A stretch of DNA of 64,000 nt. Origin: Hemiscyllium ocellatum (taxonomy: Eukaryota). The stretch is taken from positions 76,474,345 through 76,538,344 of the forward strand of contig NC_083405.1 in assembly GCF_020745735.1 (NCBI RefSeq), in the 5' to 3' direction. Numbering within the stretch: position 1 is the stretch's first letter; the number at the start of each line of letters is the position of its first letter. This document shows positions 18,823-45,781 of the stretch, piece after piece. The notes under the pieces were generated by a model. It did not search any database, was not told where the DNA came from, and was given only the letters and a program-made list of their open reading frames with translations. The position numbers and the translations under genes were made by a program.

Positions 18823-19989
18823 GTGCTTCATCAGCTGAGCTGTATGGCAAGGAACGGCAGTATGTACTTGGTTGCAAACATGGGAGAGAGACAAACCTGT
18901 GAGCAAAGCGATCCCAAATGTCCACCCGATGGAAGATATCACTTTAACACAAATGTGGTTTTTGATGCTGAAGGTACTTTCATTGCGAAATACCAGAGAT
19001 GGAACCTTTATTATGGAAATATTTATGACAAACCCAAAACAGTGCAACACGTCATCTTTAATACATCATTTGCTGGAAGATTTGGCATCATAACTGGCTT
19101 TGATATATTGTTCTATGAGCCAGCAGTAAGTTTAATTGAGAATTATGATGTAAAACAAATTGTATTTCCTACAGCCTGGATGAACCAATTGCCCCTCTTA
19201 TCTGCCGTACAGTTTCATCAAGCATTTGCTACTGCATTTGGGATCAATCTTTTCGCAGCCAATCAGCATCATCCTGAAGATGATATAACAGGAAGTGGTA
19301 TCTACACCCCATTAGATTTCCCCTATTATTACAACTCCGAGAGCAGCGAAGGTAAACTTCTTGTGGCCAAGGTCCCTATAATCACATCCCGTCAAAATCA
19401 CAGCCTACAACTTGAGGTGACGGCAGCACTTCTTAAAGGGAACAATTATTTTGAAGCTTTTGTCCTTCAGAAGAAGGGAGAAAAGCAGGAACAAATTGGC
19501 CCAATGGAAAGAAATGATCCTGGTGATATTTTTCATAATATCATGATGTATGATAATTACACATTTATCTCTTTGACAGGTTTAAAAGGTAGTCTGCACA
19601 TCTGTTCCAACACCCTCTGTTGCCATGTAGCCTACAAACGTAGCAATGATACAGATGGTAATCTGTATGCATTGGGAGTCTATGATGGGTTTAACAATAG
19701 GGTTTTTGGCGCTTATTACACACAAGTGTGTACCTTGGTGAAGTGTGCAGGCTCAAGTTATGACACGTGTGGACAAAATGTTACAACTGCCTCTGATATC
19801 ATAGACTTTGGATTATGGGGGAATTTCAGCGCAACCCATATTTATCCAGAAATATTGGCAGATAAGATGAAAATTTATCGTGCCGATACCAGAGGATGGG
19901 CTAACAGTAATTATTGTATGATCAAGAAGGGGATGTCAGCAGGTCTTGTCACTGCAGCACTCTATGGAAGGTGGTATGAGAAAGATTAG
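18823..19989 (+). CDS. Biotinidase-like copy A, coding exon 3; whole protein 509 aa
   Basis: ttgtag acceptor; open to TAG; FNTNVVFD, TAWMNQLPLL and ALYGRWYEKD motifs; catalytic Lys is Arg (18997-18999) and catalytic Cys is Gly (19096-19098). Confidence 0.95.
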   Translation: MLHQLSCMARNGSMYLVANMGERQTCEQSDPKCPPDGRYHFNTNVVFDAEGTFIAKYQRWNLYYGNIYDKPKTVQHVIFNTSFAGRFGIITGFDILFYEPAVSLIENYDVKQIVFPTAWMNQLPLLSAVQFHQAFATAFGINLFAANQHHPEDDITGSGIYTPLDFPYYYNSESSEGKLLVAKVPIITSRQNHSLQLEVTAALLKGNNYFEAFVLQKKGEKQEQIGPMERNDPGDIFHNIMMYDNYTFISLTGLKGSLHICSNTLCCHVAYKRSNDTDGNLYALGVYDGFNNRVFGAYYTQVCTLVKCAGSSYDTCGQNVTTASDIIDFGLWGNFSATHIYPEILADKMKIYRADTRGWANSNYCMIKKGMSAGLVTAALYGRWYEKD

Positions 19990-20127
19990 CTTTAGCTGCA
20001 GATTATTTCAAAGTGTGATTTGAATTAAATATAATTGGCACCATTTCAAATGATTTTCAGATAGTTTACAATGATAATATTTTTGCATTATATGTTATAA
20101 TCTTGAATTTTGGCCAATTCTTTACAA

Positions 20128-20133
20128 AATAAA
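20128..20133 (+). terminator. Candidate poly(A) signal of copy A
   Basis: First AATAAA after the stop codon; another lies at 20801-20806. Confidence 0.4.
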
Positions 20134-21794
20134 TAACAGAATGACAGTATATACTCCACCAAAAGGCAAGACAAAGGCTGCCTGTCACATTCATCACCTG
20201 AATTCTCACTGGGCCTATTTTAAGTAACATTGTGAGGACAGATTCTGCTTTTGGATGTAGGTGAGACTGCTTCAGGTAAAGCCATTTGACCTTCTTGACT
20301 TCTCCAATTACTGCGATCCACCTGCAAACTTCCAACTGCAAGCAGACGCTGGCTACAAAGTTAGCTTACAAAGCAGCGTTTCTACACTGCCACATTGATA
20401 CCAAACTGTGTCTGTGTACACAGATCTTCAATATGATTCTCACTGGGTGTCATATGGGGTTATCTGACAGAACTATAATGGATTTTTTGTTTTCCTTAGT
20501 GACAAATTTACCAGGTCTATATAAATGCTGATACAGCAGCAAAAAATGCAGCGGCTTTAAGAAACTGAAAACTGATTTGCAAAAATTAAAATATCATGGC
20601 ATTTTAACTGCAGGATTGCCTTTGAAGTCTCTGCCTAACCCATTCCAAGCCATTTAATATCTTCCAAGACAGGGTGCTTAGACATGATGGTCTGGACATA
20701 ATCAGTAAATTAACTAAAAACACTTCCGTCTCTGATTTTATAGAGCACTTGTAACATATTAAAGCACAAATAATTATGTTTTTGATGTTTGAGTTAACAA
20801 AATAAAGAGATTTGAATTACTTTTTCATGATCATTTCACCTGATGTTTAAGTGGACAATTGAATTTTCAATTAAAAAAACTAAAAAAAGTGAAACAGTCT
20901 CAAAAGCATCTGTTTAGTAAGGTGTCGGTATGTGGGAATATAACTGAACATCAACATAAGCATCTATCATATAACATTGCTGTTTAACTTGGGGGAATTT
21001 TGAAATGATAAAATGTTCAGCACAATTAAGTACTTTATTTTAGAAAAAGCAAAACATCATCCAAAATACAGAACAAACAAGAACAGTTATTGTGTCAATA
21101 ACAGAGTCCTTTTGAGAATATCTGGTTTTTGTTTTGAAGTATTATGAGAATATTGTATTGGACACTAAAGTTTCTCAGGATTCATGAATGAGATAGAATC
21201 AGATATGCTCACCTTGGGACAGAAGATCAAGGCAAGAAAATCACACACCAAATGAGAGGGAGAAAATGCTAAGGACATATTTGGGAATAAAGTGTGTTTG
21301 AATAATAGGTACCATATCGTAGAGTGAACAAGTGTACACCCAGTGATTTGCAGGGTTCAATCCCCATGGAAAGTTGAAAGGATTAGTTGAGGTTTGGGTA
21401 TTTTACCTCAGTGAATGCAATGAGATGGTATCTTTAAAATTAAATCAGCCTGATGTGTGAGATAACAAAAGAACCCTACGAAAAATTCAGAACAACTTTG
21501 ACAGAATCTGAATTCAAACTGTTGTATTAATTTATGAGTGAATTTCCAAGAAGTCCAGAAAATTTTAGTGAAAGGCAGAGTAGATGAGATGAGAAAATTG
21601 ATAGCTATCTCTTGGAGTTGTTTGTATCCTTCCTGTGGACATTTTCAAGATAACTGTGCCTGATAATCGACTGGCCACAATACGATATAATGGGCCAATG
21701 CCAGGGGAGCTAAGGAGAGAGACAATTTTCTTGATCTGATAGGATTACTGATAGTAGGGAATTTGCATGTAATTGGGAATTGTGAAAGTGCACA

Positions 21795-44130: not shown

Positions 44131-44150
44131 TTCCTCAATGACTTCAAATA

Positions 44151-44518
44151 AATTGGTGAGGCATGATTCTCCTGAGAATTTAGTCTCTTGTGGCACAGTG
44201 GTAGTGACCCTAACCCTGACCCAGGAGATCTAGATTCGAGTTTGACCTGCTCCAGAGGTGTGTTTATAACAACATTGCTGAACAGGTTGATTTGAAGACT
44301 ATCTGCATCTGGAGCATCAGAAAGCATGATCCGAAAGGTAAGATTGTGTTTAACTGCTCCTCCAATCCACTTTCCCTATTCCTTCAGCAATCCACCTGAA
44401 ATTTGCTCTGGTATTCTCTGAATTATAGCTCAAGACGGGATTGAGTCACAGTTTAGTTAAGTAAACCATAGCCTTAAATACCCTTTGGCAAGGAATGAGA
44501 GGTCTTTTTCACAGAGAA
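44151..44518 (+). repeat. 368-bp direct repeat, copy 1 (probable source)
   Basis: About 8 mismatches by eye against 46590-46957. Confidence 0.95.
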
Positions 44519-44608
44519 AAACATCAAATAGTTTCTTATTCTTTAATTCTGTTGAAGCAAAATGTACATTTATTCTAAAATTCACCAATGTTTTCATATC
44601 TATTGTAG

Positions 44609-45781
44609 GTGCTTCATCAGCTGAGCTGCATGGCAAGGAACGGCAGTATGTACTTGGTTGCAAACATGGGAGAGAGACAAACCTGTGAGCAAAGCGATCC
44701 CAAATGTCCGCCCGATGGAAGATATCACTTTAACACAAATGTGGTTTTTGATGCTGAAGGCACTCTCGTTGCAAAATACCAGAAATGGAACCTTTACTTT
44801 GAATATGCTTATGACACACCCAAAACAGTGCAACACGCCATCTTTAATACATCATTTGCTGGAAGATTTGGCATCTTTACTTGCTTTGATATATTGTTCT
44901 ATGAGCCAGCAGTAAGTTTAATTGAGAATTATGGTGTAAAACAAATTGTATTTCCTACAGCCTGGATGAACCAATTGCCCCTCTTATCTGCCGTACAGTT
45001 TCATCAAGCATTTGCTACTGCATTTGGGATCAATCTTTTCGCAGCCAATCAGCATCATCCGAAATACAATATGACAGGAAGTGGTATCTACACCCCGTTA
45101 GATTTCCCCTATTATTACAACTCCGAGAGCAGTGAAGGTAAACTTCTTGTGGCCAAGGTCCCTATAATCACATCCCGTCAAAATCACAGCCTACAACCTG
45201 AGGTGACGGCAGCACTTCTTAAAGGGAACAATTATTTTGAAGCTTTTGTCCTTCAGAAGAAGGGAGAAAAGCAGGAACAAATTGGCCCAATGGAAAGAAA
45301 TGATCCTGGTGATATTTTTCATAATATCATGATGTATGATAATTACACATTTATCTCTTTGACAGGTTTAAAAGGTAGTCTGCACATCTGTTCCAACACT
45401 CTCTGTTGCCATGTAGCCTACAAATGTAGCAATTATACAGACGGTAATCTGTATGCATTAGGAGCCTATGATGGGCTTCACACGACGCATGGCACTTATT
45501 ACACACAAGTGTGTGCCTTGGTGAAGTGTGCAGGCTCCAGTTATGACACGTGTGGACAAAATGTTACAACTGCCTCTGATATCATAGATTTTGAATTATG
45601 GGGGAATTTCAGCACAACCCATATTTATCCAGAAATATTGGCAGATAAGATGAAAATTTATCGTGCCGATACCAGAGGATGGGCTAACAGTAATTATTAT
45701 ATGATCAAGAAGGGGATGTCAGCAGGTCTTGTCACTGCAGCACTCTATGGAAGGTGGTATGAGAAAGATTGTTGTTATTGA
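44609..45781 (+). CDS. BTD: Biotinidase copy B, coding exon 3; whole protein 511 aa
   Basis: ttgtag acceptor; YQKWNLYFE (Lys 44783-44785), FGIFTCFDILF (Cys 44882-44884), DGLHTTHGTYY and ALYGRWYEKD(CCY); lies between HACL1 and ANKRD28. Confidence 0.96.
   Translation: MLHQLSCMARNGSMYLVANMGERQTCEQSDPKCPPDGRYHFNTNVVFDAEGTLVAKYQKWNLYFEYAYDTPKTVQHAIFNTSFAGRFGIFTCFDILFYEPAVSLIENYGVKQIVFPTAWMNQLPLLSAVQFHQAFATAFGINLFAANQHHPKYNMTGSGIYTPLDFPYYYNSESSEGKLLVAKVPIITSRQNHSLQPEVTAALLKGNNYFEAFVLQKKGEKQEQIGPMERNDPGDIFHNIMMYDNYTFISLTGLKGSLHICSNTLCCHVAYKCSNYTDGNLYALGAYDGLHTTHGTYYTQVCALVKCAGSSYDTCGQNVTTASDIIDFELWGNFSTTHIYPEILADKMKIYRADTRGWANSNYYMIKKGMSAGLVTAALYGRWYEKDCCY

Follow-up and report, generated by a model that had tools for sequence, protein, structure and literature searches.

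Evidence for interlocus gene conversion restricted to the last exon of tandem shark biotinidase-like genes, with relict islands around catalytic sites in Hemiscyllium ocellatum

The analysed window, a stretch of 64,000 nucleotides (nt) from the epaulette shark Hemiscyllium ocellatum (contig NC_083405.1, positions 76,474,345 to 76,538,344), carries two tandem biotinidase-like genes on the plus strand, gene A (16829-19989; XP_060681679.1) and gene B (32426-45781; XP_060681491.1), each with three coding exons. Comparison with other sharks shows that A and B were duplicated before the orectolobiform sharks diverged, and that gene conversion between the two loci has since recurred in at least three shark orders, without spreading beyond the terminal exon. 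Within the homogenised exon 3 of H. ocellatum, four short islands of differences surround the catalytic sites that copy A has lost and sites next to them, and their sequences show them to be unconverted relics of the A lineage. The full explanation that we favour, and consider probable though well short of certain, combines short-tract conversion of the terminal exon with relict islands that are kept by a balance between conversion and selection.

Conversion of the terminal exon

The divergence between A and B is distributed very unevenly along the gene. By self-BLAST, the exon 1 regions (16822-17046 vs 32419-32643) are 70.4% identical, the exon 2 regions (17420-17640 vs 35832-36046, including about 56 nt of upstream intron) 82.8%, and the exon 3 regions (18813-19987 vs 44599-45770) 95.7% over 1175 nt. 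Synonymous divergence (dS), calculated exon by exon with the Nei-Gojobori method (NG86), is likewise not uniform across exons, falling from 0.72 in exon 1 to 0.13 in exon 2 and to 0.070 in exon 3, and intron 2 is unalignable between the two genes except for two short islands. An earlier note, which was made from this stretch of DNA alone, had described an old duplication with a heavily diverged exon 1 and a nearly identical exon 3, and both descriptions are borne out by these values. It had also pointed to the region of the Lys and the Cys, to EDDI vs KYNM and to FNNRVFGA vs LHTTHGT as the places where differences gather. The codon-by-codon list of the 50 differing nucleotides in exon 3 agrees, with concentrations at 18973-19053, 19090-19096, 19273-19287 and 19639-19713, and only three differences were counted within 19290-19610, where that note had expected few.

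The clustering of differences was tested by permutation of site order, and three orthologue comparisons served as controls. The A-B differences of H. ocellatum are significantly clustered by the longest identical run (p = 2e-3), by the variance of gaps (p = 2e-4) and by the number of close neighbours (p = 5e-5), while a GENECONV-type test of the longest identical run, which uses only sites variable among seven sequences, gave p = 5e-5. No clustering was found in any of the three control comparisons. When only third codon positions are considered (18 differences), the clustering does not reach significance (p 0.09-0.42), despite which synonymous differences are 7-fold denser within the islands.

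For the cross-species comparison, orthologous DNA was used for gene A of Chiloscyllium punctatum (L001) and for both genes of the whale shark Rhincodon typus (L002) and the zebra shark Stegostoma tigrinum (L003/L004), and the B gene of C. punctatum, the A gene of C. plagiosum and the genes of the cloudy catshark S. torazame were compared at the protein level only; each species is represented by one assembly. Exons 1 and 2 consistently group by paralog. Their protein tree contains an A clade (support 100/99) and a B clade (97/91), their DNA tree groups the genes by paralog with 100/100, and in the quartet of A and B from H. ocellatum and C. punctatum, 29 residues group the paralogs and none groups the species. 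As well, in both H. ocellatum genes the 3' end of intron 2 (400 nt) and the sequence past the stop codon (800 nt) match the same paralog in the other species, not the other paralog, and A-B dS in exon 1 lies at 0.72-0.92 across species.

Exon 3 gives a different tree. A is paired with B within the zebra shark (100/99), the whale shark (81/80), the basking shark C. maximus (88/96) and the cloudy catshark (93/99), and the hemiscylliid A and B sequences form a single clade (100/100). Forcing the orectolobiform A copies to be monophyletic in exon 3 costs 170 log-likelihood units and is rejected by the approximately unbiased (AU) test (p = 3.4e-8). Moreover, three species show an A-B dS of 0.04-0.07 in this exon, compared with 0.23-0.26 between H. 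ocellatum and the whale or zebra shark. Window-wise trees therefore come out as the earlier note had predicted for gene conversion, with exon 3 grouping by species or family and the islands by paralog.

Exon 2 stands apart in that it groups by paralog although its dS is only 0.13-0.25, compared with 0.7-0.9 in exon 1. Such a low value may reflect an older conversion before the orectolobiform radiation, or strong constraint.

The limits of the converted tract are sharp and, in H. ocellatum, lie where the earlier note had drawn them. The acceptor context, TCTATTGTAG followed by GTG, is identical in A and B; high similarity sets in 10 nt upstream of the acceptor and runs as far as the first base of the stop codon of A, B continuing for three more codons. 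All three species with DNA of both genes (H. ocellatum, R. typus and S. tigrinum) have the 3' limit at the stop codon of A, and the 3' flanks are paralog-specific across species, so that this limit is the old, fixed end of the homology between A and B, and the sharp boundary at the stop codon carries no signature of selection. The 5' limit differs among species: similarity extends into the intron by 10 nt in H. ocellatum, by 18-23 nt in S. tigrinum and by 129-153 nt in R. typus, as is expected from tracts that die out in a diverged intron. Exon 1 (213 nt) and exon 2 (150 nt) are both bordered by unalignable intron, and presumably only the 1.17 kb of exon 3 offers enough continuous homology for conversion.

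Relict islands in exon 3

The catalytic triad of human VNN1 consists of Glu79, Lys178 and Cys211 (PMC5541922). By count in the alignment, these residues correspond to positions 80, 180 and 213 of the shark proteins, where B has Glu-Lys-Cys (E80, K180, C213) and A of H. ocellatum has Glu-Arg-Gly (E80, R180, G213). Gly213 is carried by copy A of H. ocellatum, C. punctatum and C. plagiosum, Arg180 by that of H. ocellatum only. Copy A is thus a member of the family by descent that, as predicted from its residues, should not be a working amidase.

The islands, which comprise 60 codons of exon 3 against 334 codons in the rest, hold both residues 180 and 213, the positions aligned with catalytic Lys178 and Cys211 of VNN1. 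Island 1 (A 18973..19053, B 44759-44839) covers the change of Lys180 to Arg and the following loop (YYGNIYDKPKT vs YFEYAYDTPKT); its derived sites 19021-22 and 19031 are common to the A genes of H. ocellatum and C. punctatum, and an IY..KPKT-like loop is present in the A-type copies of the catshark and the white shark. Island 1b (A 19090..19098, B 44876-44884) lies in the nucleophile elbow, with F211I and the replacement of catalytic Cys213 by Gly. In island 2 (A 19273..19287, B 45059-45073), EDDI vs KYNM removes an N-M-T sequon; this island is also seen in A of C. punctatum (as EEDV), and it is absent from A of C. plagiosum and from all other A-type copies. Island 3 (A 19639..19713, B 45425-45496) is located in the Vanin_C domain, where the conserved motif GLHTVHG has become GFNNRVFG with a 3-nt insertion. 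The motif is kept from rays to human vanin-1 and is altered in A-type copies; within this island, A of H. ocellatum and A of C. punctatum have in common AGG as the Arg codon and T at 19706.

The islands are not distributed equally among species. Gly213 and the core of island 3 occur in all three hemiscylliid A genes, and islands 1 and 2 are present in A of H. ocellatum and C. punctatum and B-like in A of C. plagiosum; in Chiloscyllium, part of the relict island DNA was later overwritten from B. The A genes of the whale shark and the zebra shark have no islands and keep the triad. In the zebra shark, A and B do not differ at all over codons 121-225, which form the catalytic region, and the unconverted parts are instead the linker and the 3' end. 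Because the zebra shark A keeps its triad and has a homogenised catalytic region, the islands can be tied to the catalytic loss in hemiscylliid A.

The sites of exon 3 were polarised with A of C. punctatum and with the whale shark and zebra shark genes. Six or seven derived states are found only in A and B of H. ocellatum (18855, 19254, 19435, 19540, 19778, 19884 and, less clearly, 19231), and nine or ten only in A of H. ocellatum and of C. punctatum (18924, 19021-22, 19031, 19096, 19279, 19282, 19287, 19706 and the AGG Arg codon at 19699-19701). The default alignment misplaces the indel of island 3, so that some sites scored as private to A of H. ocellatum are actually shared between the two A genes, as in the case of this AGG codon. 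The two classes alternate at least six times along exon 3, and the converted stretches between A-type sites measure at most about 110-410 nt and, where they are bracketed, at least about 25-110 nt. A similar mosaic is seen at the protein level in the H. ocellatum and C. punctatum quartet, in which the paralog-grouping residues of exon 3 (188, 191, 213 and 275) are all located within islands and the species-grouping residues are 298, 320, 326 and 440.

Outside the islands, A and B of H. ocellatum differ at 13 of 984 nt, and each differs from A of C. punctatum at 36-37; seven derived sites are shared within H. ocellatum vs one between the A genes (p = 0.035). Inside the islands, the corresponding counts are none and nine. 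The tree of the 177 nt of island DNA unites A of H. ocellatum with A of C. punctatum (98/96), and the AU test rejects the union of A and B of H. ocellatum (p = 0.018).

The synonymous sites bear on the age of the islands. Between A and B of H. ocellatum, the proportions of synonymous (pS) and nonsynonymous (pN) differences are 0.239 and 0.201 in the islands, compared with 0.035 and 0.008 in the rest, and the synonymous counts of the two parts differ significantly (Fisher p = 1e-4). Neither selection on amino acids nor relaxed constraint can raise synonymous divergence, so the islands are older A-lineage DNA spared by the latest conversions, and not only amino-acid changes that followed conversion. 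The island pS of 0.24 between A and B of H. ocellatum compares with 0.17 between the A genes of H. ocellatum and C. punctatum and 0.066 between B of H. ocellatum and A of C. punctatum, the synonymous excess belonging mostly to the lineage of H. ocellatum A. A rough estimate from the pedigree mutation rate of the epaulette shark led to impossibly old ages.

Persistence of the islands

According to the explanation that we favour, the promoters, exons 1 and 2, introns and 3' flanks of A and B have evolved separately since the duplication, while exon 3, the sole long uninterrupted stretch of homology (1.17 kb), has been repeatedly homogenised by tracts of tens to a few hundred nt, as happened in every shark lineage examined. 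These tracts cannot extend further because intron 2 is diverged and the homology of A and B stops at the stop codon of A. In the hemiscylliid lineage, copy A lost its catalytic Cys (C213G) and, in H. ocellatum, its catalytic Lys as well (K180R). The four islands are relict A-lineage DNA around the lost catalytic and neighbouring sites that recent conversions did not overwrite. Tracts running from A to B and carrying Gly213 or Arg180 would inactivate B, presumably the sole working biotinidase, and would be purged; the dense mismatches would further impede heteroduplex formation locally, and copy A, under relaxed constraint at the islands, would continue to diverge. The comparisons above establish conversion, the bounds of the tract, where the islands lie and that they are relict; the reason for their persistence is what we infer here, and the evidence on relaxed constraint in A bears on it. 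Private changes in exon 3 are 17 nonsynonymous to 5 synonymous in A of H. ocellatum vs 5 to 5 in B, a contrast that is not significant (Fisher p = 0.22), and the ratio of nonsynonymous to synonymous divergence (omega) between the A orthologues of H. ocellatum and C. punctatum is 0.63, compared with 0.26 for the catalytically intact A genes of the whale and zebra sharks.

Several points weigh against this explanation. The purging of A-to-B tracts alone would halve the effective conversion rate at most, and the islands look about 7-fold older, so purging in B together with relaxed constraint on A may incompletely explain the size of the age difference. The limits of the islands were drawn from the A-B differences themselves, which makes the contrasts between islands and rest partly circular. 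Outside the islands, the support for A with B of H. ocellatum is moderate (85/83), the AU test leaves the union of A of H. ocellatum with A of C. punctatum unrejected (p = 0.15), and the A-B pS of 0.035 is about half of that between H. ocellatum and C. punctatum (0.055-0.069). In addition, the DNA comparison covered a single Chiloscyllium gene, A of C. punctatum, and no signal of GC-biased conversion was found in exon 3, whose GC content at third codon positions (GC3) is not raised (0.36-0.39).

The strongest alternative, which we regard as possible but less likely, is that copy A has been maintained as a catalytically dead protein with a binding, carrier or regulatory role, and that selection on A removes those conversions from B to A by which the former active site would be restored. 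The reading frame of A is intact in three hemiscylliid species; given that about 4% of point mutations create stops, the chance that none would have arisen under neutrality on the path between A of H. ocellatum and A of C. punctatum is 0.002-0.014. This argument is weakened because conversion from B can repair stop codons in A. Overall, the 55 nonsynonymous and 23 synonymous differences depart marginally from the neutral ratio (p = 0.046). Gly213 is kept in all three species though conversion from B to A rewrote island 1 of C. plagiosum about 66 nt away, and A and B of H. ocellatum are identical at synonymous sites for about 260 nt around Gly213. The loop following the Lys and the GLHTVHG motif, in islands 1 and 3, are also the divergent spots of the A-type copies of lamniform and carcharhiniform sharks, but the likeness to the catshark loop hinges on gap placement.

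The islands themselves speak less for selection on A. Their pN/pS, at 0.8-1.1, lies neither clearly above nor clearly below 1; it is 0.84 between A and B of H. ocellatum, 0.81 between the A genes of H. ocellatum and C. punctatum, and 1.9 (from 20 changes) between B of H. ocellatum and A of C. punctatum, none of which differs significantly from 1. Between the A orthologues of H. ocellatum and C. punctatum, 26 of the 177 island nt differ. Islands 1 and 2 have disappeared from A of C. plagiosum, and in the whale and zebra sharks, whose A genes have an intact triad, these genes have no islands. The earlier note had attributed the islands to selection keeping a new function apart from the old one. 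Its placing of them at catalytic residues stands, but a pN/pS near 1 and the variability of the islands among A orthologues weigh against such selection, and purifying selection on B against transfer from A would be an equally good cause of what it had called the expected signature of selection. On balance, purging in B combined with a relaxed copy A seems to us somewhat more likely than selection on A. If selection on A were nevertheless the cause, the conversion mosaic would reveal which residues set the new function apart, and both the A-type loop that follows the Lys and the change in the GLHTVHG motif would be as old as the common ancestor of galeomorph sharks.

That the islands are mutation clusters, produced by error-prone repair at the ends of conversion tracts or by short imports from a third, diverged donor, seems improbable. 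The private branch of A of H. ocellatum in the islands is indeed very long (0.15 vs 0.028 for A of C. punctatum), and within 24 nt of island 3 there are about 10 substitutions as well as the 3-nt insertion. However, 9-10 island sites are common to A of C. punctatum and are therefore older than the split of the genera, and the window contains no local donor for the island sequences beyond chance 11-12-mers and no third BTD copy.

An absence of conversion altogether is hardly credible: assembly collapse or polishing error, raised as a possibility by the earlier note, is excluded because 50 real A-B differences remain and because independent assemblies repeat the pattern, at the DNA level for R. 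typus and S. tigrinum and at the protein level for C. punctatum, C. maximus and S. torazame. Extreme constraint that includes synonymous sites is excluded because exon 3 dS between species is normal, and independent recent duplications because exons 1-2 and the flanking DNA of each paralog are orthologous across species.

Gene organisation, surroundings and known systems

The coding exons of gene A lie at 16829..17041 (exon 1, 71 codons, from the ATG to a GT donor in phase 0), 17476..17625 (exon 2, 50 codons, with catalytic Glu80 in FPEKGIHG) and 18823..19989 (exon 3, 388 codons and the stop, encoding the remaining CN-hydrolase domain, the linker and Vanin_C). Those of gene B lie at 32426..32638, 35882..36031 (with the canonical FPEDGLQG) and 44609..45781, the last of which is the conversion partner of A exon 3 and comprises 390 codons and the stop, the E-K-C triad being intact. 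All splice sites of both genes are canonical and in phase 0, the spliced products are identical to the H. ocellatum proteins XP_060681679.1 (P0122, A) and XP_060681491.1 (P0121, B), and the orthologues in C. punctatum, R. typus and S. tigrinum have an identical three-exon layout. Both products score above the cut-off for PF00795 (CN_hydrolase) and PF19018 (Vanin_C). Vertebrate biotinidases are their nearest named relatives, and B matches human VNN1 with an E-value of about 1e-130.

Residue 251 (A 19210-19212, B 44996-44998), which was counted as aligned to Glu249 of VNN1, is Gln in both hemiscylliid genes, including the presumably active B, as well as in the catshark, and Glu in the whale and zebra sharks. 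The E249Q mutant of human vanin-1 was reported to be inactive. The B gene of the whale shark has Ala at the partner position of this site (YPAIL).

Two groups of A-type copies can be told apart by their signatures in the lamniform and carcharhiniform sharks, the white shark with the catshark and the basking shark with the smooth-hound (P0012, P0014 vs P0009, P0011), which hints at a third BTD paralog type in these orders. In the white shark gene model, exon 2 is B-like.

Several repeats are located in and around the two genes. A retroelement of the long interspersed nuclear element (LINE) type occupies 39620-43350 on the minus strand within intron 2 of B, and its insertion partly accounts for the length of this intron (8.6 kb, compared with 1.2 kb in A). 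Its open reading frames are broken; they match reverse transcriptase (RVT_1, E = 9e-24) and, with a score that stays below the cut-off, an endonuclease domain. Related copies are present between A and B (24091-24896) and downstream (50886-51793). A direct duplicate of 368 nt with 97.8% identity is present at 44151-44518, in intron 2 of B just upstream of exon 3, and at 46590-46957, about 0.8 kb downstream of the stop codon of B. The similarity stops about 90 nt before the would-be start of exon 3, and no BTD coding sequence follows the second copy. As well, interspersed repeats of about 320 nt (4552-4731, 7543-7862, 30147-30478, 55177-55498 and 56001-56318), with 75-93% identity and in both orientations, look like a family of the short interspersed nuclear element (SINE) type.

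In C. punctatum (L001 1-6757) and S. tigrinum (L003 1-70), A is preceded by a gene on the opposite strand whose product is a thiamine-diphosphate enzyme with TPP_enzyme domains. This arrangement presumably resembles the HACL1-BTD neighbourhood in human, and if so, copy A, not B, adjoins the conserved neighbour. We likewise take the layout of two short coding exons followed by a very large terminal exon to resemble that of human BTD. The shark products share the CN_hydrolase (PF00795) and Vanin_C (PF19018) domains with the vertebrate BTD/vanin family (human VNN1 structures 4CYF and 7SLV). Unlike vertebrate BTD, the sharks have at least two tandem BTD-type copies, and A of H. ocellatum has the triad Glu-Arg-Gly.

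The shark genes belong to the same protein family as the symplectin and pantetheinase-like paralogs of cephalopods, in which altered triads (E-K-S or E-R-S) have arisen among lineage-specific duplications, and symplectin was assigned a non-hydrolase role (PMC5541922). Unlike in the sharks, no gene conversion was described for these paralogs, and the nucleophile position is occupied by Ser in them and by Gly in A of H. ocellatum.

In the literature searched, no paper joins biotinidase, sharks and gene conversion; the conversion of the shark biotinidase exon is apparently undescribed, while the process itself is standard molecular evolution. With an exon 3 tract shared by at least three shark orders, these genes offer a clean multi-species case of conversion limited by exon structure, and the catalytic loss in one copy of one family provides a way to study the interplay of conversion and selection as a duplicate becomes a dead enzyme. 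In practice, trees and orthology calls of shark BTD genes that are based on the whole coding sequence can be expected to mislead.

Interlocus conversion between tandem duplicates that is limited by selection is known from the primate L/M opsin, globin and RHD/RHCE genes. As in those systems, the shark duplicates are old by their flanks and yet partly near-identical in coding sequence, the converted segment groups by species, and a few functionally decisive sites stay paralog-specific within the homogenised tract. Unlike in the opsin, globin and RH genes, the shark tract stays within one large terminal exon and has its 3' limit fixed by the stop codon of A, the evidence for selection at its islands is indirect, and these islands mark the loss of catalytic residues in one copy instead of the tuning of a shared activity.

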